A DNA stretch of 64,000 nt. Source: Amphiscolops sp. MND2022. Its lineage: Eukaryota. The stretch lies in NCBI GenBank assembly GCA_964187785.1, contig OZ076412.1:53258001-53322000 (forward strand). Direction: 5' to 3'. The position numbers and the translations under genes were made by a program. Positions within the stretch are counted from its first letter, which is position 1. Every line of letters starts with the position of its first letter. Positions 1,876 to 29,094 of the stretch are shown here, in pieces. The notes beneath the pieces are model-generated. The model had not been told where the DNA came from, did no database searches, and saw only the letters and a program-made list of their open reading frames with translations.

Positions 1876-1914
1876 GATAAAAAGTCTAAATGCTAAAAAT
1901 TCTAAAAATTTTCG

Positions 1915-2510
1915 CATGATGAAATGACGTCTAAAAGAAGGAATAACGTTTGAAAAATGAATGGGAAACCGTCTGAAATCGGGAAGTGTCTAAAATCGGG
2001 AATAACGTCCACAATATCAAAAAACAATCAAATTACTTCTCAAAAACAGGAAAAATAGGATATGTCCCCAATTCTTCTAGTGCCCCGCGGGCCCTTGGAA
2101 CTGCTCATGTAGCCATCTTGCAAAGCGAGGTCGAACAGGAGCAAAGACCCAACGGGAAGGGAGATCGCGAAGCGATCGTAGTGGGAGCTGGTCTTTGCAA
2201 CGGTGAGGGCGAGCGTGCAAAGACCGGATATGCCACACATTGGGTAGGGAAAGCATAGTGTCTAAAGGAATAAAATCTAATTATTCCACATTGGAGTCCA
2301 CATCCAATCACCCCAATTGACATGGATGAAGCTGTCCTAACCAATCGTACGGTTTATGATGATATTCTTTTTGATAATATTCCCGGTTTTTTTAAATACT
2401 TTGTTATTCAAATAACTTTTCAAATCAATTTATAGAAGGTTTCACATTCGGGAAGAACGTTAAAAAACGGGAATAACGTCTAAAAAACAGGAATAACGTC
2501 TAAACCGGCG
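1915..2510. repeat. Arrays of a short GGAATAACGTCTAAA-type motif flanking a ~165-bp GC-rich core
   Basis: Several degenerate copies at 1921-2010 and 2448-2505 in the same orientation; the motif recurs near 51420. Confidence 0.55.
2077..2241 (-). mobile_element. Short non-autonomous Helitron-like core (copy 1)
   Basis: About 80% identical to the reverse complement of 46029-46197; ends in GGGGCACTAG on the minus strand. Confidence 0.4.
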
Positions 2511-3449
2511 GTCGGGGCTCTGTTCGAGGTTGCCTTCACGAGTGGAAAGAAAGCTCTGCCTTCGGGTGGGTGAAGCTAGCATTCCCGGCAGAGCCGTCAC
2601 CAGAGTAAGAGAGCTACTGTTGAGTGTCAACTACGGTTGTTCAGTAGACGATGCCTGGAACTAAGGCCTCAAGAGTCCTGACAACAGGGGGGACTTAAAA
2701 ACTACCCGCACGGTCCTTAAATGGGAATCGAAGTATGATCCCATCTCAGCTTCCCCGGAATTGGCAACTTCTGTTATAACACATCATTGTCTTGAACTCA
2801 GTGAACTTGTTGGTGAATGGAACTCTACTCGTAGAGATGCTTTCCGGGACTAGGTTGATCTGGAAGGGAGATAAACCTTTATAAACGAACCCTCCTCACT
2901 ATCAGATCTTCCTTAGTCAATTGTGGTTGTATTTGTTATTGTAAGTGTCTGATTGAAATGCAAAAGAGCTCATTGACATTTGGGTCGATGCCACCACTAC
3001 TGATTGTGGTATAGGTGCTTTTCTTGTATCGCGGACTGGTAAAAGGTACTTACCATGTTCAGGTATGCCCAATGCCGAGTGGAAGTCGTTGCTTCTGTAA
3101 CCATTGTTAATTCGATGGGTACTACAAGGTACGCTTCTGCAAACTTTCTGAGTAATGGCACACGGATTGAAGTCGCTTGAACGTTCGGCCCCATCTGTCA
3201 TTTATGGGACGGGTATATGATGCGATTTTTTGCATGATCGTTGTTCATTGATCTGAGGGACTTTGCTGTGAACTCAGTAAAGGCCCATGGCTACACTAGC
3301 TCCTAAAGAGCACTGAGACACCGTCGGAGTATATATATTTGCTGTGGGAGTCTGATAAAGCTCTCAAACACTCGTCACAGTCGAAACAATTTTTTATAAC
3401 CAAAAGTGGACTGTAATAATTGAATCCCACGATAACTAGGAAATGGGCT

Positions 3450-7716: not shown

Positions 7717-9582
7717 TGTCGCAGGCTGCCGCCTGTGACGGTACGACAGTGACTACGTCGGCGAACGGACAAGAGTTTGTACCCGGAACACTACCCATCT
7801 ATTGATCGGGCTAAACTTTAAACTTAGGACTTTTACGTCATTTTGTTATACAATACATATTATGTTTGTTGATGTTGCTAGCTTTAATATATATACTTGC
7901 ACATGTAAAATTAATCTGTTAAAAGTTACATTTGAAGATCCAAATAATATAGTTGTGGTTTCAAAGATTGAAAGGCGCTTTGCAATTGTAAACGCAATAC
8001 GTGACAATGTAGCTGTATAGCGTAAAGGAAACGAGTTCAAATGGACGAAACTCTTATTCCGGAGACGTCACTTGAGCTCAGCATTTTAGCCAATCACATC
8101 GCTTCTCTTTGCTATATTAGTACTGCTTTGATTGTGTAGTGGCCGAGTACGGCCAATTGACTCAATATATATACTTCACTACACGCTTCAGTCAAATGGC
8201 CAATTCCGGCCACCTAGATGAAGTGAATTGTATACTCGTGTAATTAACCATATTAATCGGAAATTGCTATAAACGTATCCCTAATGATGAATGAAAGCCT
8301 CCACCCCGATCAATGAACCTAGTAGACCTAGTGCTAATTTAAAGGCCGAATAAAGCCTTTGCCCTCCCTTATTACGATGCTAGATTAATAAACCGGATTT
8401 GTCCATTTTCGGCCTTGTTAAAAGATGTGTTACTTTGATGGTGTAGTACTATTTTAAACAAGCTGATCATGTAATGTTTGATTTTGTTTCAACCTGTGTT
8501 AAATAATAAACACGTGGCAACGCGTGTCGTAATGACATTCCAAAAGGGATGCCTCTTACATTCCTTCAGTGAGTATTGGTATTTGTTGACCAGATAATGG
8601 TGATGATGTTTTCATAAAACAATGATTAGTGGTGCGGTTTGTGTACCTACCGAAGTGCTATTTATTTGATGTTGGATTCTCAGAAATTACCTGAATGTCG
8701 GGAATTTACCCGATTGGGGTTTCACTCAAATATGTGCTTTGAAGTGTTGATTACTTCACTAGTAATAATGATGATGTTTATCCCGTGACCTGTTAAGGCC
8801 GCGATCATGTAATATTCTCCTAATCAAAGAATCCGTGGAATGTGGCTGTCACCTTTTGAGAGTATATATACCCATGTTTCGAGAGGAGAAGTCATATTTT
8901 CCACATCCCTGCTTTGATAAAGATTGAATTGATATAACGATTCTCAACTAGTTTTCCGGTTTAAATAATTGAACTATTTGACCCGGTTCTGTCTTGATGC
9001 CTGTGACTAGGAAACAAAAGAAAGCGAGGAAATCGAGAGGGATAGAGATGCTCTCGGATATACAAAACTTAGACATCATGCTTGGTGAAAACCATTATAG
9101 CAGGAATGAGAGAGATGAGAGCTTTAATAGTAATCAGGCTAGGGGACCAAGAAGCGTCCCAAGAGATGAATTTGAAAACAATGGTGATTATAATTGCCTG
9201 GAAACAGGTAGTTTCGACCCCGGTACTAGTGCCAATCATGGCCAAAATTCAACAGGAGACAATTCAAGTGCCGAGATCAACAGGTTGTCAAGCGAGTTGA
9301 ATTCGAGATTGTCTAGGGAACTTGATGATATGATGAGTAGTGTTAATACCCAGATCCAGAGGGCAATCAATGATGCGATCAGTGGTCAAATTTTACCGCA
9401 AATCCAATCTGTCCTAAATGCCGGATCGGGACAATCGACACTAAATAAATGGAACGTTTCATCCGTGAGACCGGAAGTGAACTCCGAAGAAACCTATGGT
9501 GAGAAAGCCAAAAAAGGCAATAGAAGTGAGCAGCGCTTTGATTACCAAAATGGTAGCCAGCCTAACTTACGTGCCTACGACA
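7717..9582 (+). repeat. 5' LTR (1866 bp)
   Basis: Direct repeat of 22045-23911 with about 55 differences by hand count (~97%); begins TGTCGC and ends CGACA. Confidence 0.95.
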
Positions 9583-10715
9583 TGGTGACAGGAGACAACG
9601 AATCTCCTATCGAAGCTCCTGAGTTTCTCACGGGTCGAATGCCACCCAGAAACCATCTTCACAGTTCCCATGACAACTTCGACCCACTACTAGACACGAC
9701 GATCCCAGCACCCGAAAAGAATGCTCAGGCCCCTGAACTAGATCTCATCAACCAACTGGCTGATGCCCTGACAAGCATGCAGAATCGTCCTTCAGCCCAA
9801 CAGCTCACTATCCGCCCAGTCAACTCAAACACAATGACTTTCGATGGCAAAAGTGAGAAATTCGAACTGTTTGAGGATCTGTTCCACACGATGATCAAAA
9901 TCCAGCCTGAAATGTTTGAACAAATGAAAATTAATCATTTCCATTCGCTGTTAAAGAAAAACGCCTTACAAACATTCCGAAACATTAGCACAGCTAATAG
10001 ACAGACCCTTGAAGACGTATTAGTCATATTCCGACGAAAATACGTCAAACCTGAATCTCAAGCAACTGCCAAACACAGATGGCACCGTCTGGTGTTTGAT
10101 CCAAACACAACAAAACTACCAGATTTCGTTGAAGAATTGAATCAAGGTGCAGAAAAAGCGTTTAGAGACAACCCCCAAAAGATGATTGACAGCCTCCTAT
10201 ACGCAAAACTGCCACCGAAACTAAAAAGATCAGTTAATATGGCTAGATTAGAAAACAGCTCCTATGATGAAATCGTCGCTCACCTCGAGAGAGAGTTGGA
10301 GTTAAATGCTCTTGAAGAGTCCGACGACCTTCCAATGGCACCAATGACATCTTCAACCCCGAAAACCAAAACTGTTCCGTCCAAGGCACAGATGAGCGTC
10401 ATCACATGCAACTACTGCAAGAAAAAGGGCCATATGGTCAAGGATTGCGAAAAACTCAAAAAGAAAAAGGAGAAAGAAGCCCAACAAGGCAAACCGACCC
10501 AGAAAAAGACCTACCCCAAACGCAGTACTTGTGGCAAAACCAACCATCCTGAAGAGAGATGTTGGCAGGGAGCAGGTGCGCACCTTAAACCCAAACGCAC
10601 CAGACCAGAGGACGCGTCAGACAATGATCCTGACTCTAAGGTCTCCAAACCCCACTACAAGCCAACATCATCCAGTTCTCAAACTTCATCCAGCAAAGAT
10701 GACCAAAAAAACTAG
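8997..10715 (+). CDS. gag: Gag polyprotein (572 aa) beginning inside the LTR
   Basis: Intact ORF; capsid-like region (TFDGKSEKFELFEDLF...), zinc knuckle CNYCKKKGHMVKDC and a degenerate second knuckle STCGKTNHPEERC. Confidence 0.9.
   Translation: MPVTRKQKKARKSRGIEMLSDIQNLDIMLGENHYSRNERDESFNSNQARGPRSVPRDEFENNGDYNCLETGSFDPGTSANHGQNSTGDNSSAEINRLSSELNSRLSRELDDMMSSVNTQIQRAINDAISGQILPQIQSVLNAGSGQSTLNKWNVSSVRPEVNSEETYGEKAKKGNRSEQRFDYQNGSQPNLRAYDMVTGDNESPIEAPEFLTGRMPPRNHLHSSHDNFDPLLDTTIPAPEKNAQAPELDLINQLADALTSMQNRPSAQQLTIRPVNSNTMTFDGKSEKFELFEDLFHTMIKIQPEMFEQMKINHFHSLLKKNALQTFRNISTANRQTLEDVLVIFRRKYVKPESQATAKHRWHRLVFDPNTTKLPDFVEELNQGAEKAFRDNPQKMIDSLLYAKLPPKLKRSVNMARLENSSYDEIVAHLERELELNALEESDDLPMAPMTSSTPKTKTVPSKAQMSVITCNYCKKKGHMVKDCEKLKKKKEKEAQQGKPTQKKTYPKRSTCGKTNHPEERCWQGAGAHLKPKRTRPEDASDNDPDSKVSKPHYKPTSSSSQTSSSKDDQKN
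9583..9594 (+). promoter_or_regulatory. Primer-binding site TGGTGACAGGAG
   Basis: TGG immediately after the LTR-terminal CA; resembles the complement of a tRNA-Leu 3' end (TGGTGTCAGGAG, 11/12). tRNA identity is uncertain. Confidence 0.75.
10706..10712 (+). promoter_or_regulatory. Putative -1 ribosomal frameshift heptamer A AAA AAC
   Basis: In X XXY YYZ register directly before the gag TAG; the -1 frame is the frame of ORF 11048-11251 leading toward protease. Confidence 0.7.
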
Positions 10716-13700
10716 CTTCGCCACGACTCCAATATAACCAACTCGTCTCCGTCCGACAATACATCAAATCGGACCCTCCAACTAAAAACTTCCACAATTA
10801 CAAACAACAATTGATGGGCTACCCCTCTGTTGTCTGGCAGCAGCAGATGGATAAAGCTATAATCATTACTTACAACAACACCCATTTATTCCAAAAACCA
10901 ATTCCTGTCTAGGACCCGGACTATACAACTACCTTCCCTACCCGGTTCAGGCCCATTCCCCTGATCGATGATTACAATCCAATATACATCGACCCAGACT
11001 ATGGCAGAGATCCTTATTGGGACACTGAGATTTATAACCAGGACCTCTTGCAATTCCAGTATGTCCTAGATGACATTGAACACTACAACATAACAGTCCA
11101 CGAGAACCCTCTAATTACCCATAACAAGAAAACACGGGCACTAATTGAAAATTGGCAAATGAGCGATGGTACAATCCACCCAGTCTTCCCAAACCCGCTG
11201 GGAACCGAAAATCCTGAAAATATTGCCGAATCCATACAAAATTACTATTAGACGAGAAACAATCCAGAATGTACTCATAACCAAAGATGGTGAACCAGAC
11301 TGTATACCCCTGTCAACCAACATTATTCTCAAATGCAAGAAACGCATGCTTTATTTCCCAATGGACTTTGGGGAAGTGACCATTGATGGACTCATCGACA
11401 CTGGGGCACTGTCCAGTGCAATTCCTGAAATGGACCTCCGGAAAATCCGCCTTTCATTTCCACAATTTGTCATCCGGGAAGGTCCCCCTCCAAACTTCCA
11501 AATCATGGTCGCTAATGGGCAATTGGAAACTCCTAAGAGCACCATAGAGCTCAAATTCGAAGTTGGTGACATTGAGTTCCATCAAATCTTCATAGTAATG
11601 GAACATTTGACAGGACCAATCATTGGACTAATGTTCCTTCAGAGAAATCATACAGTCTTGGACATGAGACAAGGAATCCTGAATTTCCCGTTCTTTTCAA
11701 TGCAGCTTAAAACAGCTGACCACAAATATTCCAACGTACTAGAACCAATTCTCAACCCCACTAAGATAACAACTCCGCCAAATGATAGAGTCCAATATAG
11801 GACCAATTCCTTACTGTATCCTGAGAATGCGGTTACTGGGATTTTGCAACCGAGCGACCTCCTACATGAAGAAAGCGACATCACATTTTGCCCAGCCTTG
11901 GTCACTCTAAATGATGGCAGTATATCGATACCTGTGAATAATTTCACAGACCACCCTTATAAACTTAAAAAGGGACTTCATATTGCCAATTTCTTAGTCA
12001 TGACGCCAGAACAGATGAAATATGTCAAACCGGTAGACCCAGCTTCAACCTGGCACCTCTTGCAAAATGACCAAGAGCAGGCAGCCCATTATGTCAGCAG
12101 CCTCATCAAGACGAACAAAAATCCTCAGAATTCCAAAAATGACTGGTTCCCAACCCCAGAAAACCCTGGAAACCCCGAGGAACACACACCCATCCAGAAA
12201 AAAATCCTTCGAGAACTACAGGCCTTACAGGACCTGGAAACACTCGACCCCACCAAAGATGAAGAATCTCGTGCAAAATTCCTAGAAAACTTTGATTGGA
12301 AAGATTCCACCCTTACTCCTGAAGAAAAGGAGAAAATTGAGGAATTACTAGTAGAATTCCATGACATATTTGCACGACACAGATTTGACATAGGCATGAA
12401 CGAGGACTTCAAGGTGAAACTGACGCCTAAGGACGATTCCCCGGCCTATAGTCAAAGCCTTCCAGCACCTATCAATCTGAAGGAGGACATCCTAGTTGAA
12501 TTAGCCATGTTACACAAATATGGCATAATAACTACACTGCCATTTTCGAAATATGCAAGTCCAATATTCGCACAAAAGAAACCGAACGGAAAACTCAGAC
12601 TCTTGGTCGACTTGAGAAAAATCAACAACCTCATATCCGATGATTACATAAACAATAATCACCCCGTCAGTACTTAAGTCGACGCCGCCCAACACTTAGC
12701 GGGCAAAAAACTGTTCTGTAAACTAGACTGCTCACAGGCATACCACTGCTTGCCGATGGCTGACCAACAATCGATTGAAATGTTGGCCTTTAACTTCGCC
12801 AGTCGCACATTTGCATACAGACGTTTGGCACAAGGCCTTAGCCGGGCTCTGTCCACATTTTCGAGCTTTATGAGGGAATACCTTGACAAAGTCATCAAAG
12901 CGGACCAATGTGCCTAGTATGTGGACGATATCGGCATCGCAGCCAAGGATGCTGACCACCTCATAGCTAACCTGAGAGCAACATTCAAATGCATTCAGGA
13001 AGCAGGCCTTAAGTTGACAATGCACAAATGTCACTTTGGTGCAAAAGAATTTGATTTTCTCGGACGAACTATTACTCCACAAGGCGTCAAACCCCAGAAA
13101 CAGAATGTACAGAACTTTCCGGAAAAGACCAATTTCCCGAAGTCGAAAAAGGCTTTACAACGCTATTTGGGCTTCCTGAACTATAACAGGAATTATGTCC
13201 CAAGACTTTCAGAACACCTTGCTCCATTCTATAAGATGCTGAAAAGTGACGAGAAGGTCCCAGTATTGAAGGAATTAGTCCAGCAATTTGAAGAAATCAA
13301 TAAAGCACTAGACAAACGCTGCGATTTAGCCCTACAACAACCTATACCGAACAAGCAAATTGCACTAATGACTGATGCAAGTTTTGGTGCAGCCGGGAAC
13401 GCGGTCCTAATTGAAGACGACCCAAGCCAGAAATTGACGTCACTCAGAAAGTCCTATGCCACTGTAGCATATGGATCAAAAATCTTCACCCCGGCACAGA
13501 TCAAAATGTCAATTTATGCCAAAGAATTCCTTGCAATTTCTTTTGCATTCAAAGAATTTGGACACATCTTCTGGGGTGCGCCGAAACCGGTCATTATCCT
13601 TACAGATAACAAAGCTGTCACGCAATTTTTTCAAACGAAAATAATACCTCCAGCCCTGTGGAACGCGTGCGATTATGTGATTCAGTTCAATTTTGTCACA

Positions 13701-15901
13701 GCGCACATCCCAGGAGCACAAAATACAGCTGCCGACTATTTGTCCCGCCTGGAAGCGGACTCGAAGGACAAATTAGTCATCAACATCCGCGAAGATGTAC
13801 AAACGGTACCAATCGAAATAAATGTCCAATCAGAAGGGGTGTCACAGGAAGAACAAATCTTCTACACGAATGACGACGTTGAGACAGAGGAACAATACTG
13901 GGCAAGGAAAGAAGCAATCAGGAAAAATCCAGCTATTGAAGAGCCAACGGTTACAATACAAACTCTGTCAACAAATCTGGTCAAGCAACACCCTGATATA
14001 CAAGTCCGATTGAGGAAGGCGATTCAGATCATTATCGAGCAATCCAAAGATCCGGTACTACAACAATTGAAAGCAAAACTGCTTCATGAAGAGTATTCAG
14101 AAAATCTACTGCAACAGGAAGCTCGATACAGGCATTATGAAAACAATCTGGAACGAATTGTATTAAAGGACGAAATCCTGACAAGGCAATACTTTGATGA
14201 AACAGGGAACGTGGAATACCATCAAATTCTGCTCCCGCAACACTTACTCCAGGAATTGCTTCAGTCTCTTCATGGGACAGCGCACAAACACTCTGGTTTC
14301 TCAAAACTTTTGCAGGAAATTCGACAGAGGTATTACTACCCTAGCATGGCTAAACACGTCAAGAAATGGGTAGAAGGGTGTGAAGAAAGTGCAAGGGACA
14401 AACGAGTCCCCAACGCAACAATTACGCCTGAACTACTCAACTTGCCCGAATGGGACCTTGGACCTGAGGACGCCATGCAGATTGACCTATTGCCGAATCT
14501 TCCCCCAATTGGAGGATTTAAAAATGTCCTAACAGCAATTGACGTATTCTCTAGATATTTGTTCGCCTATCCTCTTACGGACGCATCGGCGATCAACGTA
14601 GCAAAAGCCCTCATTGACATTATGACTAAGCACGCATATTTACCGACAACACTTATTACTGACAAGGGTACTGCATTCACTTCCACGATCATTGCGGAAA
14701 TTACGCAAATTTCGGGGATAACACTCAAATGTGCAACAACAAAACACCCACAAACAATTGGGAATTTGCAGCGGACCCATGCCTCACTGAAAACAAATCT
14801 CAAAATGGCATGTGGAGAATACCGCCGACAATGGCACAAATACTTGCCACTAGCAGTACTAAATCACAACACTAGTTACCATACCAGCATCGGTTGTGAG
14901 CTGACGAGAGTATTTCATGGAAGAATTCCATATAATATCTTGGATCACAAGCTTGGAAACAATCCAAACGAGCAAGTCAACCCAACAACCGAATTTGCGG
15001 AAGATTTACAAAACCGGACAAAAATCCTGATTGACAAAACAAAGCATAACATTATGCAGTCATATATCAAGTACAAAGAGTATTAGGACCGCAAGGCAAA
15101 AGCCGCTCCATTAAGGGAGAATGATTACTGCTTTGTATTACAGCCGAAAGCGGATCATCAAGGATCAAAAATCCCATTCCGTGATTATAGGTGGGTCGGA
15201 CCATTTATAGTCCAAAAAGTTTTACCTAATGAAAAATATATTGTACGACGAATCAATACAAACAAGACTCAAATATTGCATCGAATTCGCCTTAAAAAGT
15301 TTGTCCCCAATCAAGCGCTTGAGGATAATTTCCGAGAACAGCGGTTACAGCCTGATGAAGAGATCGTCATTCCGCAAGACGACTTATATACCATAACGTG
15401 GGAAACAGATTTTGGCGAGCAGCTCATAACACGAGGACACGATCCTATTCCGTCTAGCTTGCCGAGTGCGGCAGAAGCGAATTCAAGTGACGCAAACGAG
15501 AATCAAGTGGATTACATAATCACGAGAGACGAATCAAATCACGCTGACTGTACGGCGCACAGCCGGAATGAACAATTAACAGATGACGTTACCAAAAGAA
15601 ATGAAGCTGATGAAGAGACTAGAAATGAAGAATCTGATTGGCCGAATCCGGCCGTTTCCCCAAAAAGTCAAGAAAAAGCTTTGCCGAAATCGGATGATGG
15701 ACTAAAAAACGATGAAAATTTTTCACAAAGAAATCCGATGAATGAAAATGATGTACAAAATTCTCCAAAAAGGGGAATGATATTATCGTGACCGAAATAT
15801 CGGAAAATGATACCAGAAAGGAAAGCCTGAGCCCTAGAGGAGGGAAGTATAATCTCAGGCCTAACCCTAACCCAAACTACTCAGAAGACTTTAGATACTA
15901 G
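10713..15901 (+). pseudogene. pol: Pol (aspartic protease, RT, RNase H, integrase), disrupted by stops and frameshifts
   Basis: LIDTGALSS (PR); YASPIFAQKKPNGKLRLLVDLRKIN and YVDD at ~12918 (RT); LMTDASFG, ILTDNK (RH); HGTAHKHSG, QIDLL, TDKGTAF (IN); WVGPFIVQKV C-terminal module; ends NPNPNYSEDFRY*. Confidence 0.95.
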
Positions 15902-17289
15902 AAAAGGCTAAATTCAGCTCACAAATGAGCCTGGAATTCTTTTTTCTTTTATCTTTTTCTCTTTACCAGTCCCAGGAAAGTATTTTTGAACAAATAATGG
16001 GACCTCAAAGGATCCCTTCCAGAAGAGAATAAATACGGGATCAAGAAACCAAAGAAACAAAATGACAAATACAACAGAAAAAAACAAAGTTTACAGTCTA
16101 GGTGTACATATATACATATGCACAATTAGTCTTTAGAGCTGCTAGTCGTAGCCTTCATCACTACGGAGGATGACCTGGACCGGGACTGGCTCCTTTCCAT
16201 ACGTCTCCGCTTGGTGTCGCTGGGCAGCCTAATAGCGGGAGCATCTCTCACGGAGGGAACGTCAGCTGCAGTAACATCCTTACAACTCGTTCCTGCCCCA
16301 GAAAGAACATAGCGATGGGAAGACTTGAAGGACTTGTAAATGGACGAACGCCCGGAGTTATCCACATATGTCCAGGGATAATATTCGGAACAGAGTCCAG
16401 ATTGCCCGAATGAAGGAGGAGAGCAGGGAGAATTTTTCAAGGCTGACATCAGTACAACAGAGAGCTAGGGAGTCAGAAACCTCAGATAGGTAACTTTGGC
16501 AAGGCAAAACTACATCCGATATTCGTGACTGAAGGCCTTGAGTGTCTACCTTCCCCATCGCCACAGCTGGATATCGGGAACTAGCAGAGGTTAAACACAG
16601 ACAGCTCAACTTGAAAAGGTAATAGAGGTGCTCATGCGTTTGCAGGAAATCAAGCCCCATAAGGAACTCTATGAGGTCACATGAGTCATCAGTAAGGCTC
16701 GGGTTGGAAGAATGGTAAGTTCGGAGATAATCCAGCAATGCCAGATACTCGTCCCTGCACGCAGCCTCGTTTGGCCCAGTGACCCAGGATCGCAACTGGA
16801 AAGTTGAATATAGGATGCCAAAGTGGCGGAGAGCCACCTCAGTAGGCCGTTTCATCATGATGTAAGGGTCAAAAGCTGCCAACCCCTTGACAATACCAGA
16901 GCTAAGACCAGTATGCTGGAGGACACCTCTGAGTAGGTGCTCGATGTACCTCTTGGCACTGGTTTTGAAGTCGGACTTGGCTGAGTCGGCTGTCTTATCA
17001 ATGACAGCCTTACTTGACTTCTTGTTGAAAAGTAATTCTGCAGCCTTCAGATTACTAGCAGCAGCCACCTTGTTGGTCATCTTGAGTCTGACTAGGAATT
17101 CGTCACCTTTCATGAATTTCCCGTCGCTAGTCCGAAAATCCAGCAAGAGAAACCAGGCACTCTCGAGAGGGACAGTGTCGTGCTCATACACCCGAAAGCA
17201 AAGCCGGCTGATGAACCTGCAAACCTCCCCGCAGAGGTAGAAGGTAGCGTCCCGTCTATGAGAAAGATTGACGGTAAAACTTGAGACGT

Positions 17290-17360
17290 CTGAAACACAA
17301 AACCAAAAGAGTCCATATCAGGACATGTGACCAATGCATACCGAAGCATAGCTTACTCAC
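17290..17360 (-). other. Intron 3 of the antisense gene (71 bp, phase 1)
   Basis: GACT|GTGAGT ... TTTTGTGTTTCAG|AC; joins ...QRLIND to YVSSFT, in frame with ORF 16358-17191. Confidence 0.8.
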
Positions 17361-17577
17361 AGTCGTTGATGAGACGCTGAAAGAATTCCAGTCTGACGGA
17401 GAAGAACTCATCGGATATCAAGGACCACTCAAAGCTCTGGACCTTGTTGTGCACACCCTGGTTCTCCTGTCGGCGGGAATGGACAGTCAGATATCGGAGG
17501 ACTGACTTCCATCGCTTGAGTATATCCCGACATAAATCCGGGAGTTTGTCTACTTCCAATTTGCTGGTAGTTATAGC

Positions 17578-17644
17578 CTAAATACAATGAGGTTATGAAA
17601 CTTGTCATACAATTGCATGTCCCTATCACTTCGTCCTACGTTAC
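17578..17644 (-). other. Intron 2 of the antisense gene (67 bp, phase 0)
   Basis: ATG|GTAACG ... TCATTGTATTTAG|GCT; joins ...AFCFTQM to AITTSKLEV in frame. Confidence 0.7.
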
Positions 17645-18157
17645 CATTTGAGTAAAGCAAAATGCACTAACTCGAGTGAGCTCAGATGATTCCAGGACCC
17701 AATCTTCAGTGACAGACCCGCCTAGGGAAACGAGGAGGCATTGTAGGACGGAGAACATGTCAATATGGCCAAACACACTGTAAGTGAACTTGTGCATCAG
17801 AAGTTGTAAATCAAGCTATTCAAATCGGAAGCAGCTCTGGATGCCTCGTGAGTAGAAATGATGCTGGTCAATTGTACGAATATAGTCCACAGAGCAGGCC
17901 GAGCAAGCAACAATGTCGGGATCGGTTGACACTACTGATATCAAACGTGACAGAGACCCCAGTTCACCGGTGAGGTCAGCAGCAGGAAGCGCACTACGAC
18001 AGATGAAAACCCTACAGAGTTTGGTCTCCCTCCAATAGCGCAGAAACATCAGACGACCTGTCCCACTGTCCTCAAGTTCGATGGAAAAATGCTGTGCTAA
18101 AGTCACTTGTTCAGCAATGTCCTCCATGACTCAGTTGAAAAAATGTTGGAATATAGC

Positions 18158-18310
18158 CTGAAATGCAGAATGGAGTCACTCACAAGATAATGCAATTTCA
18201 CCTATGTCAGCTCCCATACATTTATTTACGTGCATATATGCAATATTATACAAGTTCGTATGTTAAAGTGTAAGTAGGAATCGGAAACAGGACATTCGAA
18301 TTATACTTAC
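18158..18310 (-). other. Intron 1 of the antisense gene (153 bp, phase 0)
   Basis: ACA|GTAAGT ... TTCTGCATTTCAG|GCT; joins ...DWSEERIT to AIFQHFF. Confidence 0.75.
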
Positions 18311-21169
18311 TGTGATTCTCTCCTCACTCCAATCGAAATCGTGGAAGACTGTCTGGTAGTCAGTGAAGGACCCGACTCGTGACCATAAATTCCGGAGGAC
18401 GGTTAATTCCCCCTGCCTTTGGATGAAGTCCCCGATGAGGCAAATCTGAGTTTCAGCACGTGACTTGGGAGTTACTAAGGCTGTGGTGCTTCCTTGAGAT
18501 AGTCCCCATAGAAGGGGAACCTTTCTCCTACATCAACAAGTTCGGTGTGAATGAACTTTGGAAGTTCCAGCGCCAATTCAACTTTACTGAGGATCTTCCC
18601 GTTCTTCCCTCTAACCCTATGTTGGATTTTTCCTGTGACGGGGTCAATGCTCCTGAGATGCTCGTAGCGCCAACGCTGGTCCCTTCGGAGGTGTTTTTCG
18701 GTTCGATGGTGCCTAAGAACTTCGACCACCCCTTTCGTCTTCACAGAAAAGTTCTTTTTACACATGTGGCACCAGACCATGTGCGGATTATGAAGGGGAT
18801 CTGCGGGGCCAGATATGAAGGACCGAGTCCATCCGATCTTGGAGAAGAACTCTTCTCGCATGGGTACTCCTCGTCTCGGAGTGGTTTTGGGCTTGCGGGT
18901 CTTCTTGCCTGACTTTTTCCTTTGAAGTTTTTGCGTCGAAGGTTGCTCTCGTAGTTCTGACAATGTCGCATCAAGACTGCTTTGTCCTGTGGATTCTTCT
19001 CCTCTTCCAACTGATTCAAGGACTGTTGATGATTGCTGTGCAGGCCTGGTGTCCTCGATCGACGATCTTTTGAAACTGTTGGCTATCAGAGCCATTTCCC
19101 TTGAACTATCGCTATCCTCCGGCATTGATACACCCACGACTTCAAGCAATGCACTAAAGTCCCCACTCGCCTCTGAATCCTGTCCGGGATCGATGAGGAA
19201 TCCTTCGCAACTAGAGCTTCCTGCTTGTTGTGGTCTAGGTGTCTGGGCTCGGCTCTTGAATTGCCCAGTTGTCGAAGGGGCCGTGGCTAGCTTTCCTTTC
19301 ACTGCACCTATGACCATTTGCTCCATGGTTGTACAGGTCATGCTGATGGCCTCATCGGTCAGGACTCGTAACAAGTGGTAGATCTGAGGCTCAGTAAAAG
19401 CTACAGTTCTGTGGCCCACTGGGAAAGTGTAAGGGTCTTCGGCCTCGAAATACTGTTTTAAAATAGCCCTGCTGCGACCAGACAACTCTCTTAGTGGTTC
19501 CTCCTGTTGTCGGGCACCCATCGTTGACGTCCCAAGTGGGTCGTTAATGTAATTCTCAAGCTCAGTATCGGTGTCTTTTCCGGACTCAAGCTCTGAACAA
19601 ACTGGAATCGTTCCGTACAGTGGAGAAAGTCATCAAGTCCAGAAGCCGCTTCCGTGGTATCGATGTCGCTAGTCTCCTCGGTTACTCGAGCTTTCCCTTT
19701 GGGTAACGGGGGAGGACCACTGGTTGTTGATGAGGAGTCTTCCTCAATTTGCAAGAAAGAGGAATCTGGGACCACTCTTGATGTTAAAGCAGTGACTTGC
19801 GGCTCAGGGAACTCAGTGGAGGTGGTTACAGCGATTTGTAAGAGTGACTCAAGCTGGGATAAACTCGGCGACTCACCTAGATTCCGACCAGCCTGCGTTG
19901 GGGTGCTGGTTTTCCTAGGATCTAAGAGAGGGGGGGTGGACAAACCCCCCGTGCAAGAAGAAGCTACGGGTCTGCTTTCGTCAGTTTCCTCTGCCGGTGG
20001 CGATGCAGCAACTTGGCTTGCCTCCACTCGCTGTACCATCTACGTCGCGTAAGCAGTAACATCCACATTACTGTCAGTGCTGAGAGGGGATTCAGTAGTG
20101 TTCTGATCCTGGAATGTCACAAACCTGACGTGAGGAAGAAGAGTCGGGATCGGATCCTGAGCAAGATTGGCAGTGAGGACAGAAGACGGGTCAAATGTTT
20201 GTTCGGACTGTGCGTGGATGTTCACCGTGGTGTTGGTTGGAGTTTGATTTTCGTCTACATTCTGATTCTCTAAACAGAAAGAGATGAAATTTGGCGGTGA
20301 GCTTCCTTGAAAGAAATCCATTTTGCCGCATTAGAAAACTTCCGGAAGCGTCTTGAAAACTTGAATGAAGTGTGTTTGCACGCGTTCATTGACGGAAATA
20401 GGAAGCGTTTTATGAACAAATTTACCCCTGATCAAGTTAAATTAAGTTCAAATCAGAAACAAACCAACCTTCAGCGGATGACATTCTATGACGAGTCAAC
20501 TGTTGGGAACAAATCCTTGACTGGTTGCTGATAATTGGGAAGTCGGCTGGATCCGGCAGGAAGAGAGAGGAACCCTCCGACAGAGAGAGGTCTGCAGCTG
20601 AGTCAAAGGCGAGGAAAGACAGGTATTAACAAAGCAAATCCAAGTAAAAGATACAATTGGAATATAAATGGAATTAAGTTGGAACTGAGACTGGGTGAAA
20701 GAAATTAAAAGATTGGAGTTCGTGGCTGAAGAACATTACCAGACTAATATTATATGATTATCTACATATTTAAAATGTACATGGAGTCTGCCAGTGAAAT
20801 GTACAGAAAGTTTTCATTATTCACAGTTTGATTAGTTAGAGGCCGATTATGGCCGTTTGCCTTATTTTGTTTTACCGTTTTGTTCCGTTGTCCCAGTTCT
20901 TCTTAGTTAGAATTTTCGCCATTTTGAATTATTTTAGGTATTATTTTCGCCATTTTAATTATTCATTTTTCATTGTATCAATGAGTAACTCTGATTGGCT
21001 GAAGCCATTTTGGGTAGATTCAGTAACGCAAGCCGTTAATCACCAGCAAACAACCTGTTAATTACCCACTTGAAGTGAAGTTATTTGTTGATAACAACTT
21101 GAAGATGCTTCTCTCACCCACTTGAGAAATGATATTAGGGGGTCTTACCAACTACAATTCAAAGAAGCG

Positions 21170-22133
21170 ATGCCGCTAAAAATTCCATTCAGGAAAGTTT
21201 ACGACGACTCGGGACGAGAGGATCTACTGCCGAGTAGAAAACCCGGAAAAAAGTCCCAACTCGGCATACGACGGAATTTCAGTAGATTCATTCTGCCTCA
21301 AATTATTCAGCAATCAGTCGTCTTACCAGCTTCGAAAATCGCTAAAAAACTCATAATGAGCAAGTTTAACCTCTCAGGAAAATTGTTTGACTTTGAAGAA
21401 AATGATTTTGATAACTCCGATAAATCAGTAATCTACATATCCAGTAGTGAAGATGAGTCCTCAGACTGGGAAACCGATTGTTCGACGGACACCGAGCAAC
21501 TGATAGCCCGGATTGAAAGAGAAGTTACTTCCAGCCCAATGCTATTCGGGGGCAGGATAATGACCATGGATGAACCCGAAGAGGCGAAAGCAGAGCCAAG
21601 TACGTCTCAAGTGGAAGAAGGAGTGACACCGAAACTAGGCCTTAAATACTTCGATAAAGAAATGTGCTATGCCCCACCAAGGAAATTTGAAAAGAAGCGC
21701 ATAGAGCTCTGTAACACAATAATGCCCGTCCTATAATCGCCAATGTCTCCCCCGGAGCACGAGAGGGGTCCAAGTGTGGACACCCCCTTCTCCAGCCGAC
21801 CTCGAGTAACTTTCATGCGTCCTACCACGGCAAAATACAGTACCCTATCAAAATGTCAGTGAGGTACGTTATACAGGATGCATGGTTTGCGGCCGTTCAG
21901 TGGACTCAATCAAGGACGAAAAGCTGAAATGGTATATGCAACGATCTACACCAAGAGATGAGCCTGAATACATCACGAGACTCAGAAAGGAGGCATATGA
22001 AAATGGACTTAATGCTGGCTGTTTTCTTTTCATCACACCCGCAGTGTCGCAGGCTGCCGCCTGTGACGGTACGACAGTGACTACGTCGGCGAACGGACAA
22101 GAGTTTGTACCCGGAACACTACCCATCTATTGA
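21170..22133 (+). pseudogene. Sense accessory ORF (ORF3), one nonsense codon plus one frameshift, extending 89 nt into the 3' LTR
   Basis: ORFs 21122-21736 and 21882-22133 link through MSKFNLSGKLFDFEEND...VIYISSSEDESSD...YTGCMVCGRSVDSIKDEKLKWY...TPAVSQAAACDGTT...TLPIY*. Confidence 0.6.
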
Positions 22134-23911
22134 TCGGGCTAAACTTTAAACTTAGGACTTCTACGTCATTTTGTTATACAATACATACTATGTTTGTTGA
22201 TGTTGCTAGCTTCAATATATATACTTGCACATGTAAAATTAGTCTGTTAAAAGTTACATTTGAAGGTCCAAATAATATAGTTGTTGTTTCAAAGATTGAA
22301 AGGCGCTTTGCAATTGTAAACGTAATACGTGACAATGTAGCTGTATAGCGTAAAGGAAACGAGTTCAAGTGGACGAAACTCTTATTCCGGAGACGTCACT
22401 TGAGCTCAGCATTTTAGCCAATCACATCGCTTCTCTTTGCTATTTTAGTACTGCTTTGATTGTGTAGTGGCCGAGTACGGCCAGTTGACTCAATATATAT
22501 ACTTCACTACACGCTTCAGTCAAATGGCCAATTGCGGCCACCTAGATGAAGTGAATTGTATGCTAGTGTAATTAACCATATTAATCGGAAATTGCTATAA
22601 ATGTATCCCCAATGATGAATGAAAGCCTCCACCCCGATCAATGAACCTAGTAGACCTACTACTAATTTAAAGGCCGAATAAGGCCTTTGCCCTCCCTTAT
22701 TACGATGCTAGATTAATAAACCGGATTTGTCTATTTTCGGCTTTGACAAAAAGGTGTGTTACTTTGATGGTGTAGTACTATTTTAAACAAGCTGATCATG
22801 TAATATTTGATTTTGTTTCAACCTGTGTTAAATAATAAACACGTGGCAACGCGTGTCGTAATGACATTTCAAAAGGGATGCCTCTTACATTCCTTCAGTG
22901 AGTATTGGTATTTGTTGACCAGATAATGGTGATGATGTTTTCATAAAACAATGCTTAGTGGTGCGGTTTGTGTACCTACCGAAGTGCTATTTATTTGATG
23001 TTGGATTCTCAGAAATTACCTGAATGTCGGGATTTTACCCGATTGGGAATTCACTCAAATATGTGCTTTGAAGTGTTAATTACTTCACTAGTAATGATGA
23101 TGATGTTTATCCCGTGACCTGTTAAGGCCGTGATCATGTAATATTCTCTTAATCAAAGAATCCGTGGAATGTGGCTGTCACCTTTTGAGAGTATATATAC
23201 CCATGTTTCGAGAGGAGAAGTCATGTTTTCCACATCCCTGCTTTGATAAAGATTGAATTGATATAACGATTCTCAACTAGTTTTCCGGTTTAAATAATTG
23301 AACTATTTGACCCGGTTCTGTCTTGATGCCTGTGACTAGGAAACAAAAGAAAGCGAGGAAATCGAGAGGGGTAGAGATGCTCTCGGATATAGAAAACTTA
23401 GACATCATGCTTGGTGAAAACCATTATAGCAGGAAGGAGAGAGATGAGAGCGTTAATAGTTATCAGGCTAGGGGACCAAGAAGAGTCCCAAAATATGAAT
23501 TTGAAAACAATGGTGAATATAATTGCCTGGAAACAGGTAGTTTCGACCCCGGTACTAGTGCCAATCATGACCAAAATTCAACAGGAGACAATTCAAGTGC
23601 CGAGATCAACCGGTTGTCAAGTGAGTTGAATTCGAGATTGTCTAGGGAACTTGATGATATGATAAGTAGTGTTAATACCCAGATCCAGAGGGCAATCAAT
23701 GATGCGATCAGTGGTCATATTTTACCGCAAATCCAATCTGTCCTAAATGCCGGATCGGGACAATCGACACTAAATAAATGGAACGTTTCGTCCGAGAGAC
23801 CGGAAGTGAACTCCGAAGAAACCTATGGTGAGAAAGCCAAAAAAAGCAATAGAAGTGAGCAGCGCTTTGATTACGAAAATGATAGCCGGCCTAACTTACG
23901 TGCTTACGACA
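22045..23911 (+). repeat. 3' LTR (1867 bp)
   Basis: Copy of 7717-9582, followed by the TSD CATCT. Confidence 0.95.
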
Positions 23912-24061
23912 CATCTACATCTTCTTTTTTCCTGGTTGCCGGTAAGGATTATGTTTTGCTCAAGCGACCTTATTTTTGTTGATTTGATACTGGTGGAGAA
24001 GTGCATAAATCACTAGAGGCTCCAATCACTGACGTGATTCATTAGACAGGTGTACAAGGTA

Positions 24062-24785
24062 TGTACCGTCCAGCAAAAGACGTCACAAAAATTCGATGAA
24101 ATGTGCGATAGCAAAATTTCTAAATCAAGATGGCCGACCTGACAGGTACTGGAAATTGAAAAGGATGATGAAAAATAATGCAAAGACACCCCCTCCAGCC
24201 CGAGAGAGAACACACCGCCACAGAAGTATCCCCGATATCGCTGTGTTGTGCCATCTCCCTCGGAAGACGTCCCAGCTGCCAGCAGAGCCCGAAGAATGGC
24301 CCAAGAGATGAAGAAACTCAGAAGTTTGCATATTTTGCATGTGCCACCTAGTAGGTCCAAGACCAAGGCTCTCTGACATTGACGCCTGATGTTTCTTTAG
24401 CCTGTTGTACCATATTTGTGGTTTTTGTAGAAGTTTGGTGATGTTATAGCCCTTATTTCAGCCAGTTTAGACGTTATTCACTAATTAAATGTACTTTGGC
24501 TAAACCCCTGTTTTTGGACCTCGGAGGTATTTAGGAACACGCAGGAGCCTTAGGAATTGTTTTTACAGGCTTGTGGGACGTGTCCGGACTTTGAGAGCGC
24601 CGGCACGTCGCCTCGGAGCTCTAATAGAGGAGACTCCTTAGACAATTGGAAAAGTCCCTTTTAGGAGACCAATTTGGGAATAAAAACAAATGCCTAGGGC
24701 TGTAGTAACACAACCGTCTCCTGTCTAAGCACCCTAGGCATTGTCCCACTTCTATGATGTACTCTGCTAGGTGGCTGACGTTACA
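24062..24785 (+). repeat. 5' LTR of element 2 (724 bp)
   Basis: Direct repeat of 28370-29094. Confidence 0.9.
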
Positions 24786-27335: not shown

Positions 27336-28685
27336 ATGAGTGACGAAACGACTTTTCAAACAATCTAACGTCTGTAGCCAAGCAGGCTTCCCAAAAAATC
27401 AATATTCGTTGCTCGATTCATGCCTAGGGTGAACCTCGGTTCTCGGTACCACAGTTGCGTGAACCATATCAATGTGAAAACACCGGACAAGAGATTGGCC
27501 CGGGGAGTACCTGTAGTCTCCCGAGAGAAAACAACACCAAGCATGATAAAATACCTGGAGCTTCGAAGCTCTGAGAACTGCTTGGCCAGCGGCCGTGCTT
27601 TTAAAACTCCACTGATTGCTCTGGAACGCATTTTTATTGCCAAAGACTGTTTTCATTGTTTTAATGATCTGCCATACCTGATTTATTAACTTCCGTTGGT
27701 CATAGTCTATCATCGCTATCGACATAATCATCCTCTTGAGAAGCAGTTTATTTCCATCTTTTACATATACACTGGTGCCTATTTTACCTACACAACACCT
27801 TTATCTGAGCGTACACTGCAAACTCAATAGATTGAATTGGTCCTCACTTTTGGTGACATTTTTGATTTATGGGATCAATTTTTCCGCTGGTGCTATTTTT
27901 TGTGCAGTTTCTGTTGGCCAAGAACTACGACCGTTTTGCAAGACCACAGCCATTACTTTTATTTTTCGCTTTTCAAGTGCTATCGTGCATTTTGTTCAAC
28001 CTTACCTATCAGGTAGGACCCAGGTTGATGTCAATCCTGTTGTGATGTGTGCTTTTTATACAGATGCATTAAAATAAAGTGATAGAAATTTTAGGTGCGA
28101 AATTAAAAATTTGAAAACGTTTCCAATAAAATGCTGTGTGTCTAAAGTTGCTAATGCTATTCCAGTGCTAGAACCCATTATTGATGTGGAATCTGAGGAG
28201 GCCTGCTAGGCTAGCTGCAAAAACTCATCTTTTTGGGCAATGATATTTTGGGCAACGACTTTCATTTAGATTCCTGAAGCTGTTGCAACAGTATCACTGG
28301 ATGATGGCAACCGAGACGTGAACATCCACTCTCGTTTGTCGAGGACGACAAACTACGGCCCGGGGAGGATGTAACGTCCAGCAAAAGACGTCACAAAAAT
28401 TCGATGAAATGTGCGATAGCAAAATTTCTAAATCAAGATGGCCGACCTGACAGGTATTGGAAATTGAAAAGGATGATGGAAAATAATGCAAAGGAACCCC
28501 CACCCAGCCCGAGGGAGAACACACCACCACAGAAGTATCCCCGAAATCGCCGTGTTGTGCCATCTCCCTCGGAAGACGTCCCAGCTGCCAGCAGAACCCG
28601 ACGAATGGCCCAAGAGATGAAGAAACTCAGAAGTTTGCATATTTTGCATGTGCCACCTAGTAGGTCCAAGACCAAGGCTCGCTGA
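27336..28685 (+). pseudogene. Decayed accessory ORF of element 2 running into U3; product unknown
   Basis: ATG at 27336 after a pyrimidine tract and CAG; broken plus-strand frames 27420-27689 and 27736-28077; frame open 28305-28685 across the PPT/LTR junction. Confidence 0.4.
28362..28369 (+). promoter_or_regulatory. Polypurine tract GGGGAGGA of element 2
   Basis: Purine run directly abutting TGTAAC of the 3' LTR. Confidence 0.7.
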
Positions 28686-29094
28686 CACTGACGCCTGATG
28701 TTTCTTTAGCCTGTTGTACCATATTTGTGGTTTTTCTAGATGTTTGGTGATGTTATAGCCCTTATTTCAGCCAGTTTAGATGTTATTCACTAATTAAATG
28801 TACTTTGGCTAAACCCCTGTTTTTGGACCTCGGAGGTATGTAGGAACACGCAGGAGCATTAGGAATTGTTTTTACAGGCTTGTGGGACGTGTCCGGACTT
28901 TGAGAGCGCCGGCACGTCGCCTCGGAGCTCTAATAGAGGAGACTCCTTAGACAATTGGAAAAGTCCCTTTTAGGAGACCATTTTGGGAATAAAAACTAAT
29001 GCCTAGGGCTGTAGTAACAAAACGGTCTCCTGTCTACGCACCCTAGGCATTGTCCCACTTCTATGATGTACTCTGCTAGGTGGCTGACGTTACA
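28370..29094 (+). repeat. 3' LTR of element 2 (725 bp)
   Basis: Direct repeat of 24062-24785. Confidence 0.9.

Follow-up and report, generated by a model that had tools for sequence, protein, structure and literature searches.

A large antisense gene with predicted introns as a probable long-standing component of a Ty3/gypsy-type LTR retrotransposon family

Introduction

Several plant Ty3/gypsy retrotransposons carry antisense ORFs between pol and the 3′ LTR, namely those encoding the TRP28 proteins of Retand/Tat elements, gene23 of maize Grande, and the corresponding ORF of rice RIRE2 (PMC11963269, PMC7264820). All or most copies of an element retain these ORFs, which also recur in distant lineages; they are suspected to act as DNA-binding regulators, and their ancestry is unknown. 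The Grande gene23 has its own promoter and a nuclear product (PMC11963269, PMC7264820). Complex retroviruses, too, have antisense genes that are not expressed from the 5′ LTR promoter and whose products are nuclear regulators, as HBZ of HTLV-1 and APH-2 of HTLV-2 (summarised in PMC11963269). Among animals, the Ty3/gypsy-like elements of bdelloid rotifers (PMC6431247) and the planarian Burro (PMC5408684) owe their larger size to coding sequence captured within gag-pol or downstream of it. The word “antisense” is absent from the text of the giant-transposon review PMC6431247.

Here we describe a gene on the antisense strand of an LTR retrotransposon located in a window of 64,000 nucleotides, by which we mean the whole stretch of DNA that was analysed. 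An initial annotation of this window had proposed that the gene is built from a hAT DNA-transposase. In a limited literature search, which did not extend to Repbase, we found no earlier account of an LTR element of an animal, the probable host in the present case, that carries a gene with introns on its antisense strand.

Results

The LTR retrotransposon occupies positions 7717–23911 of the window, a length of 16 kb with LTRs of 1.87 kb, and is bounded by the 5-bp target-site duplication CATCT (7712–7716 on the left, 23912–23916 on the right); the corresponding duplication of the L002 copy is AAAGT. The 5′ LTR (7717–9582, plus strand, 1866 nt, with TG..CA ends read directly) is 97% identical to the 3′ LTR (22045–23911, plus strand). 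The gag ORF begins within it and has its first 196 codons there, a layout repeated in five other complete elements; the gag start is present once more in the 3′ LTR (ORF 23323–23982). Immediately 3′ of the first LTR, within the gag ORF, lies the PBS-like, TGG-initiated sequence TGGTGACAGGAGACAACG (9583–9600, plus strand), which is conserved in the window and in L002 and served to delimit the LTRs in six copies. As for a polypurine tract, no purine run is present immediately 5′ of position 22045, where the sense strand is pyrimidine-rich. The gag gene (8994–10715, plus strand, 573 codons) is DUF1759-like and has a CCHC knuckle (Pfam DUF1759, E 3e-5; zf-CCHC, E 0.008). It is followed by pol (PR-RT-RH-IN; 11166–15791, plus strand), which is divided among three ORFs (11166–12677, 12921–15086 and 15276–15791) sharing 89–93% amino acid identity with the pol of L008. 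The latter contains RVT_1, RT_RNaseH, Integrase_H2C2 and rve domains, and precomputed Pfam matches in intact relatives follow the order gag-asp_proteas, RVT_1, RT_RNaseH(_2), Integrase_H2C2, rve. The carrier is a member of a Ty3/gypsy-type LTR retrotransposon clade. A further sense-strand frame, ORF3 (21122–22133, plus strand), would comprise about 260 codons if intact and extends some 90 nt into the 3′ LTR; it is broken in the window (21122–21736 and 21882–22133) and unbroken in L003, L006, L007 and L008. A Pfam search with ORF3 gave no match, and its dN values are 0.22–0.39 with dS saturated.

Between pol and ORF3, on the strand opposite to gag-pol and not overlapping pol, a single large gene runs from 20321 to 16126 on the minus strand. 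The GC content is 0.48–0.49 across this segment and 0.42–0.44 in gag-pol. The initial annotation had joined the minus-strand frames into one gene of about 1300 codons within the TSD-bounded element; the single gene stands, and what had been missed is that three of its frame changes, to judge from the sequence, are not damage and correspond to GT-AG introns (18310–18158, 17671–17578 and 17360–17290). The gene is accordingly read as four or five exons with short GT-AG introns and predicted junctions. Exon 1 (18311–20321, minus strand) starts with the ATG at its 20321 end and encodes a conserved N-terminal motif, disordered S/T/P/E-rich stretches, a conserved module of about 70 residues (19485–19294), a basic patch (18921–18868) and a CCHH zinc finger (18774–18691), which the initial annotation had also recognised. 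The first intron (18158–18310, minus strand, 153 nt, GT..AG) is missing in distant lineages, where P0438, P0442 and P0327 are continuous without an insert. Exon 2 (17672–18157, minus strand) encodes an alpha/beta region and measures 486 nt in all copies compared; it is followed by intron 2 (17578–17671, minus strand, 94 nt, GT..AG) and by exon 3 (17361–17577, minus strand, 217 nt), which is interrupted by an additional intron of 110–112 nt only in L002, L006 and L007. The next intron (17290–17360, minus strand, 71 nt, GT..AG) keeps its donor (GTGAGT/GTAAGT) and acceptor (TTTCAG/TTTTAG) in six copies, with a length of 70–139 nt. The last exon (16126–17289, minus strand) starts in phase 1, encodes an all-alpha domain with a basic/Ser tail, and ends with the stop codon TAA at 16128–16126. 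Across the six copies the GT-AG introns, which contain pyrimidine tracts, are common in position and variable in length. Once they are removed, L002, L003, L007 and L008 are open from ATG to stop over 1,289–1,298 codons without an internal stop codon; the frame of L006 contains a single one.

Scored against the intact relative L008, the window copy has six lesions, in agreement with the approximate number given earlier: the stop TAG 20042 and 1-nt deletions near 19630 and 18494 in exon 1, stops TGA 18133 and TAG 17818 in exon 2, and a 1-nt insertion near 16416 in the last exon. Because of these six lesions, and of the broken pol and ORF3, the window copy is a dead insertion.

The antisense gene was found in all 11 other loci examined, and in each of the ten with readable flanks (L001–L010) it lies tail-to-tail with integrase, on the opposite strand; since these loci were retrieved through matches to the antisense protein, the rate of presence is ascertainment-biased, and the window is the sole unbiased sample. 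Homologues came from three ENA assemblies and one JGI contig; compared pairwise with the L008 copy, their proteins are between 90% and 23% identical to it. The placement of the gene is the same in the most divergent lineages (23–31% amino acid identity), which include assembly ERZ26696514. Clustering at 90% identity gave 219, 180 and 61 clusters for three parts of the gene, many of them with dozens of members and many with intact exon-1 ORFs of about 675–690 residues; at 50% identity there are 385 clusters.

Purifying selection on the structured exons is strong: dN/dS is 0.039–0.065 in exon 2 and the last exon, at dS values of 1.2–2.3, and in exon 2 the sites variable among six copies number 71, 47 and 149 at codon positions 1, 2 and 3 (of 162 each). 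The same pattern surrounds the zinc finger (43, 22 and 117 of 127). The introns of the six copies, at 49–68% identity, are nearly randomised, with about 80–95% of sites variable in every phase, next to conserved exons; the tblastx signal is highest in the antisense frames. From the presence of the gene in 11 other loci, including lineages of 23–31% identity, together with this selection, we consider it likely that the antisense gene is a stable, ancient and integral accessory component of the element, as the initial annotation had suggested in opposing it to a one-off insertion.

The protein, in part as observed and in part as predicted, combines long disordered stretches, acidic and rich in Ser/Thr/Pro, with an NLS-like basic patch, one CCHH finger, an alpha/beta region without a conserved catalytic triad, and a C-terminal all-helical domain of about 400 residues. 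AlphaFold2 modelling of the C-terminal domain from the intact homologue P0007 (mean pLDDT 60) yields confident helices over residues 45–255 (pLDDT 80–93). For exon 2 the model has low confidence (mean pLDDT 44), and its element order, H-EEE-H-E-H-E-H, resembles at that confidence the RNase-H-like fold.

The motifs on which the hAT proposal had been based (FSIELEDS..LRYW, ILKRWKSVLRYL, LAAFDP and LFKLSCLCLTSASS) are all present. If the antisense gene were an exapted hAT transposase of the ZNF862/Buster-like kind, captured by the retrotransposon and catalytically dead but still recognisable in its BED/TTF finger, RNase-H-like core, insertion domain and hAT C-terminal domain, this would be consistent with a CCHH finger that has aromatic residues upstream, with the beta-beta-beta-alpha-beta-alpha order of an RNase-H-like fold in the low-confidence exon-2 model, with the large all-helical domain that comes next, as in hAT, with a weak inverted repeat with CAG..CTG-type ends around the unit, and with the weak matches given below of the finger to zf-BED and to the hAT BED finger and of the exon-2 model to Hermes. 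Most comparisons, however, do not support it. The Pfam families hAT, DUF4371, DUF659 and Dimer_Tnp_hAT had no match at E ≤ 10 in the window pieces, the intact homologues, the distant lineages or more than 150 family members, the 43 and 60 alignment members included, and the precomputed Pfam data contain no matches at all, however faint, on the antisense gene in ten loci. The finger itself was matched by Zn_ribbon_19 in 30 of 43 members and weakly by zf-BED in 4 of 43, with a best E of 0.025 that falls short of the Pfam cut-off. Profile searches of PDB sequences were without a match, as was Foldseek against the PDB with the C-terminal model at E < 1; with the exon-2 model, Hermes (8sjd_C) appeared at rank 5 with a non-significant E of 0.36 and a probability of 0.14. 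When hhalign was run against eight Pfam-verified hAT transposases, only the zinc finger aligned, its best local match landing on the BED finger (P 0.043 and 0.1, probability about 1%), and neither the exon-2 profile (P 0.42) nor the C-terminal domain (P 0.32) exceeded a probability of 0.2%, although a hAT-versus-hAT control at 25% identity reached 100% (E 2e-99). The dimerisation domain PF05699, found in 8 of 8 control hATs, was matched at E ≤ 10 by none of 60 C-terminal homologues, nor by the L009 and L010 versions. No acidic DDE triad is conserved across five lineages, in which F-E is the sole invariant of the first strand and the expected second Asp is replaced by S-C-S-G. Around the antisense unit no 8-bp target-site duplication was found, and the only inverted repeat is weak and about 30 nt long, in line with the earlier statement that hAT TIRs and an 8-bp TSD are lacking. 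A hAT origin is not supported by the tests run, and we regard it as unlikely.

Three conserved non-coding blocks flank the gene. The first, immediately upstream of the ATG (20322–20480, minus strand), has a column identity of about 66–94% in six copies, with 86–94% over 20240–20471, and lacks codon periodicity (variable sites 20/51, 15/53 and 17/51). It contains the palindrome CTTCCGGAAG at 20339–20348, 18 nt upstream of the ATG, and is a candidate internal promoter and 5′ UTR. The other two are the arms of the weak inverted repeat: CTGGCAGACTCCATGTACA (20776–20794, minus strand) forms the 5′ arm, and a palindrome-rich block just past the stop codon (16089–16125, minus strand) forms the 3′ arm. 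The repeat is palindrome-rich and inconsistent among copies. Neither of the poly(A) signals AATAAA and ATTAAA occurs within about 530 nt past the stop.

These two arms allow a bolder reading, in which a class I element took up an entire class II transposon; the blocks 20794–20776 and 16125–16089 would then be its former ends, and the BED-like finger the last trace of a transposase that now serves as a regulator or targeting factor. We hold this to be improbable. Were it true, animals would harbour a lineage of mobile elements that is a chimera of class I and class II, and the captured gene, propagated solely by way of unspliced sense RNA, would since have both acquired and shed spliceosomal introns. 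More doubtful still is a captured DNA transposon or foreign cassette of unassigned superfamily, ending at the inverted blocks (about −470 from the ATG and +4 to +35 from the stop), with the protein as ex-transposase or passenger. Few non-coding sequences of the element are as well conserved as these two blocks, which are reverse-complementary in part (27 of 31 positions in L002), and in a shuffle test their score was reached by 0 of 500 shuffles in L002 and L008 and at 0.004–0.006 in L003 and L007. The signal is, however, weak in the window and in L006 (0.05–0.10), and because the blocks are made of self-complementary words (ATGTACAT, TACATATGTA), direct and inverted alignments score nearly alike in three copies (18–20 versus 19–23). 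Moreover, the blocks have no flanking duplication, their arms show no covariation, and a role as promoter and terminator would fit them just as well. A single nested insertion peculiar to one copy, a host gene trapped by a pair of LTRs, or meaningless shadow ORFs opposite pol, for which the six breaks in the window copy and its GC difference from gag-pol might speak, is refuted by the recurrence of the gene, identically placed and oriented, in ten other elements, the lack of pol overlap, the codon periodicity, a dN/dS of about 0.05 and the open 1,290-codon frame in four copies.

Discussion

The explanation we favour, and consider likely, is that the antisense gene serves the element as an accessory gene, which would be spliced, driven by an internal promoter of its own and translated into a nuclear zinc-finger regulator. 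Transcription would start from the block with CTTCCGGAAG just 5′ of the ATG and proceed convergently with pol, and the antisense pre-mRNA would be spliced; antisense transcription and its start site, like the splice junctions and the poly(A) site, are predictions from the DNA. In the sense genomic RNA the introns stand as reverse complements and so could not be removed by splicing, and each round of retrotransposition would therefore copy the gene introns included. The protein may act in the nucleus as a nucleic-acid-binding regulator for the element, with transcription control, RNA handling or integration targeting as candidate roles, and not as an enzyme; as it has no homologue of known function, this role is proposed from its domain anatomy.

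How does this gene compare with the systems described so far? Like the bdelloid elements and Burro, the carrier is Ty3/gypsy-like, probably resides in an animal and has extra ORFs. Like hAT proteins of the Hermes, ZBED and ZNF862 types, the antisense protein has one N-terminal CCHH finger, in weak alignment with BED, and after it an alpha/beta and then a large helical region, but it differs from them in having no detectable similarity in the core or dimerisation domain, no DDE triad and no 8-bp TSD. HBZ is likewise encoded on the antisense strand of a reverse-transcribing element, its transcript is spliced, and the nuclear role predicted here would be shared. However, HBZ is a small bZIP protein expressed from the 3′ LTR, whereas the present protein is six times larger, has a CCHH finger and would be driven by a candidate internal promoter about 1.7 kb from the 3′ LTR.

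The plant antisense ORFs resemble the present gene in position, orientation and retention in distant lineages. In contrast to them, it is far larger (about 1,290 codons), has 3–4 spliceosomal introns and a host that is probably an animal, and its element bears a second, sense ORF3 downstream of it. No sequence kinship to the plant proteins was seen: Transposase_28 (PF04195) had no match, and no Pfam match above noise was obtained on the antisense protein. The idea of an element-encoded antisense regulator would match the logic of both HTLV-1 HBZ and the Retand and Grande antisense proteins of plants.

Architecture of the carrier element

The LTR retrotransposon that carries the antisense gene spans positions 7717–23911 and is flanked by a 5-bp target-site duplication, CATCT. 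Its LTRs (7717–9582 and 22045–23911) are direct repeats of 1866 nt, 97% identical, with ends of the TG..CA type, and the sense strand encodes gag (8994–10715), a broken pol (11166–15791) and a small third ORF, ORF3 (21122–22133). In the window and in the related loci L002, L003 and L006–L008 (hereafter the six copies), the 1.7–1.9-kb LTR encloses the gag start codon, at 8994 in the window, together with the first 196 codons of gag. A second gag start is therefore present in the 3′ LTR (ORF 23323–23982); its interpretation as the sign of a second element in tandem was rejected, as the position of the gag start within the LTR explains it. A TGG-initiated, PBS-like sequence is located directly 3′ of the 5′ LTR, within the gag ORF. 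No polypurine tract was found directly upstream of the 3′ LTR (22015–22044), where the sense strand is pyrimidine-rich and lies within ORF3, and L002 is alike in this respect. ORF3, which encodes a C..CG motif in its roughly 260 codons, represents a second accessory gene and extends into the 3′ LTR by about 90 nt. It is disrupted in the window and intact in four copies (L003 5233–6015, L006 5227–5997, L007 5043–5810, L008 5127–5912, all on the minus strand), with a dN of 0.22–0.39 and a saturated dS, and it returned no Pfam match. Rfam and tRNA scans of the window also gave no match.

Several other features were seen in the window. Starting 146 nt past the element, a pair of 729-nt direct repeats (24057–24785 and 28366–29094; 96.4% identical and 4.3 kb apart) is probably another LTR element. 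Several ORFs of 167–183 amino acids at 39655–43493 (−), with strong GC and AT skew and an integrase-like C-terminus, look like the remains of another retroelement. A tandem repeat at 47241–47906 comprises three to four copies of a unit of about 184 nt that are 70–85% identical. Finally, WSD (E = 4e-19) and PHD (E = 2e-8) domains occur in a 545-codon ORF at 52327–53964 (−), which probably represents one large exon of a host gene for a BAZ-like chromatin remodeller.

The antisense gene is a multi-exon gene

The coordinates and motifs reported in the initial annotation proved right: all motifs are present on the minus strand between 20321 and 16126, on ORF pieces that follow each other in changing frames. 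Its proposal that these frames form one gene also holds, as the frame is open in related copies; what has to be revised is the nature of three frame changes, which alignment of the window with these copies identifies as introns and not damage. The gene thus consists of exon 1 (18311–20321), exon 2 (17672–18157), exon 3 (17361–17577) and a last exon (16126–17289). Exon conservation extends up to donors of the GTAAGT, GTGAGT or GTTAGT type, is lost over 70–154 nt of near-random sequence of variable length, and returns immediately 3′ of a pyrimidine tract with a terminal AG. The reading phase was followed exon by exon, with nothing joined. Four loci (L002, L003, L007 and L008) are open from ATG to stop over 1,289–1,298 codons with no in-frame stop, L006 has one stop, and exon 2 measures exactly 486 nt in all six copies. 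Compared with L008, its closest intact relative, the window copy carries six lesions, in agreement with the earlier count of about six: TAG at 20042, 1-nt deletions near 19630 and 18494, TGA at 18133, TAG at 17818, and a 1-nt insertion near 16416.

An extra phase-0 intron of 110–112 nt is found only in L002 (9809–9918), L006 (9903–10014) and L007 (9713–9822), which form one subclade. Distant lineages lack intron 1; their homologous ORFs P0438, P0442 and P0327 run straight across the junction. With introns present or absent by lineage, the family could show intron gain and loss in a gene that is copied only via reverse transcription. In the distant-lineage locus L010, a tandem array with units of about 17 codons was observed between exon 2 and the next exon (about 2150–2700).

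The antisense protein begins with a conserved N-terminal motif, followed by long Ser/Thr/Pro/Glu-rich stretches and a conserved module about 70 residues long. Next come a basic patch, a CCHH zinc finger (18774–18691), a helical linker and an alpha/beta region encoded by exon 2. The C-terminal domain of about 400 residues, for which an all-helical fold is confidently predicted over about 210 residues, precedes a basic, Ser-rich tail. A joint alignment of the finger and exon-2 rows (A2), anchored on the read-through ORF P0210, was discarded because MAFFT placed the two sets on top of one another; separate analyses were made of exon 2 (A4) and the finger region (A5), and five natural ORFs that span the junction served for a further alignment (A6).

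Selection and distribution

Variable sites among the six copies fall at codon positions 1, 2 and 3 in 71, 47 and 149 of 162 codons of exon 2, and in 43, 22 and 117 of 127 codons around the finger, and in the introns about 80–95% of sites vary in every phase. The pairs L002–L006, L006–L007 and L002–L007 have a dN/dS of 0.039–0.065 for exon 2 and for the last exon, with a dS of 1.2–2.3; this ratio is well below the value of one proposed as a test, and the introns of the same pairs are 49–68% identical. These closer pairs were used for selection estimates, since the saturated dS of L002–L003 renders its dN/dS unusable. Evolution is faster in the largely disordered exon 1 than in exon 2 and the last exon.

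Word-indexed searches returned 219 clusters at 90% identity for the last exon, 180 for the finger region and 61 for exon 2. Many of these clusters contain dozens of members each, and intact exon-1 ORFs of about 675–690 residues are numerous; no names or Pfam domains are attached to any of the clusters. An exhaustive search of 1.84 billion representatives with the exon-2 profile yielded 385 clusters at 50% identity, and the 150 matches listed are all unnamed family members that provide no bridge to a known family. A scan of JGI metagenomes with the finger profile gave no match.

In all ten elements fetched for comparison (L001–L010), the antisense gene lies tail-to-tail with integrase on the opposite strand. 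Two of these, L009 and L010, derive from a second assembly (ERZ26696514) and encode antisense proteins only 23–31% identical to that of L008, with RT and IN being 55–74% identical; a third assembly supplied the homologous ORF P0327, and a JGI contig P0320. In an eleventh locus, L011, a decayed antisense gene lies beside an unrelated env-bearing element of the same assembly, a gypsy-type element at 1–4993 whose env-like ORFs match Monjiviricetes_fusion. Given this spread over divergent lineages and assemblies and its constant placement, the antisense gene is an old, stable part of the element clade; that it is a stable part of the element had been suggested in the initial annotation from a single copy. 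All comparison loci were reached through the antisense protein itself, which makes the window the only unbiased sample. Taken as a whole, the antisense gene is a multi-exon gene under selection and integral to the element.

The modules of the element differ in divergence. Among L006, L007 and L008, pol has a dS of 0.3–0.7 over most of its length, whereas the antisense gene reaches 1.2 to more than 2 in the same element pairs, a synonymous divergence several-fold above that of pol. Similarly, nucleotide identity is 80–95% for gag-pol but 53–79% for the LTRs, the antisense gene and ORF3. The replicative and the accessory or regulatory modules therefore differ in their histories, which most simply suggests modular recombination between lineages.

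The antisense gene and hAT transposases

The proposal that the antisense gene was built from a hAT transposase is not supported by the comparisons made. Hits to hAT-related Pfam families were absent at E ≤ 10 in the window pieces, intact homologues, the natural read-through ORF spanning finger and exon 2, the distant lineages, and 43 and 60 alignment members. The finger gave sub-threshold Pfam matches only, to Zn_ribbon_19 in 30 of 43 members and to zf-BED in 4 of 43 (best E = 0.025). Among PDB sequences, no match to the family profiles was obtained. Foldseek searches of PDB and BFVD with AlphaFold2 models of the C-terminal exon (pLDDT 60) and exon 2 (pLDDT 44) returned nothing significant; for exon 2, Hermes ranked fifth with a non-significant E-value of 0.36.

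A regex scan of the fetched loci revealed no resident hAT that could serve as comparator. Control hATs were instead obtained from metagenome contigs with a degenerate C-terminal motif, giving eight full-length, Pfam-confirmed ORFs, all with Dimer_Tnp_hAT and some also with zf-BED, DUF659, hAT-like_RNase-H or DBD_Tnp_Hermes. When family profiles were compared with these by hhalign, the finger alone aligned, to the BED finger (P = 0.043 and 0.1, probability about 1%), and there was nothing for exon 2 (P = 0.42) or the C-terminal domain (P = 0.32). Two half-sets of the hATs, at 25% identity, found each other with a probability of 100% (E = 2e-99). No conserved acidic triad exists in the antisense protein across five lineages. 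The finger may thus be BED-like, and the rest of the protein has no demonstrable hAT ancestry. As the controls carry a SERVFS-type C-terminal motif and are not Buster/ZNF862-like, a very remote link to hATs is still conceivable.

Conserved non-coding blocks and a possible mode of expression

The best-conserved stretch of the element's 3′ half falls within the 160 nt that precede the antisense ATG and the first 80 coding nt: column identity across the six copies is 86–94% at 20240–20471, and the exons of these copies are 55–80% identical. The block upstream of the ATG lacks codon periodicity, and for this reason a sense-strand ORF across it (20307–20531) was rejected. It contains the palindrome CTTCCGGAAG (20339–20348), located 18 nt before the ATG, which may resemble an ETS-type site. 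Its position and conservation make the block a candidate internal promoter and 5′ UTR.

Two further conserved blocks, at 20776–20794 (about 470 nt upstream of the ATG) and 16089–16125 (directly after the stop), may simply be regulatory elements. They are partly reverse-complementary, forming a weak inverted repeat of about 30 nt, and may alternatively be the relic ends of a captured cassette. However, a targeted test showed that the words involved are self-complementary, and hence confounded by palindromes, and that the signal is uneven between copies; neither an 8-bp duplication nor arm covariation was found at the blocks. Generic inverted-repeat scans for hAT-style TIRs produced inconsistent weak pairs. 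The initial observation that the gene has no 8-bp duplication around it is therefore borne out, the TIR-like signal amounting to one weak, palindrome-confounded pair.

We envisage that an antisense transcript would start at the candidate internal promoter, convergent with pol, and that only this transcript would be spliced. Since the sense genomic RNA contains the introns in reverse-complemented form, they would pass through reverse transcription unspliced. The product would be a nuclear protein with a zinc finger and no catalytic residues, and its role would be to regulate or guide the element.

Relation to known systems

Retrotransposition reporter cassettes use, by design, an antisense intron that survives the RNA intermediate, and the antisense gene is a natural case of such an intron. 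With hundreds of copies in several lineages at 23–98% protein identity, clearly delimited domains and a sharply conserved candidate promoter, the family provides an extensive and diverse natural data set. Genes of this kind are missed by annotation pipelines that mask LTR elements or call sense ORFs only.

Antisense accessory genes are established in complex retroviruses and in some plant Ty3/gypsy lineages. In a limited search of the literature that also covered a review on giant transposons, no LTR retrotransposon of an animal was seen to carry such a gene. The closest known examples are the antisense ORFs of the plant elements Retand, Grande and RIRE2, together with HBZ of HTLV (PMC11963269, PMC7264820). 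Compared to these, the antisense gene described here resides in a probably animal host, differs in size, is interrupted by introns, and encodes a protein without any known domain.
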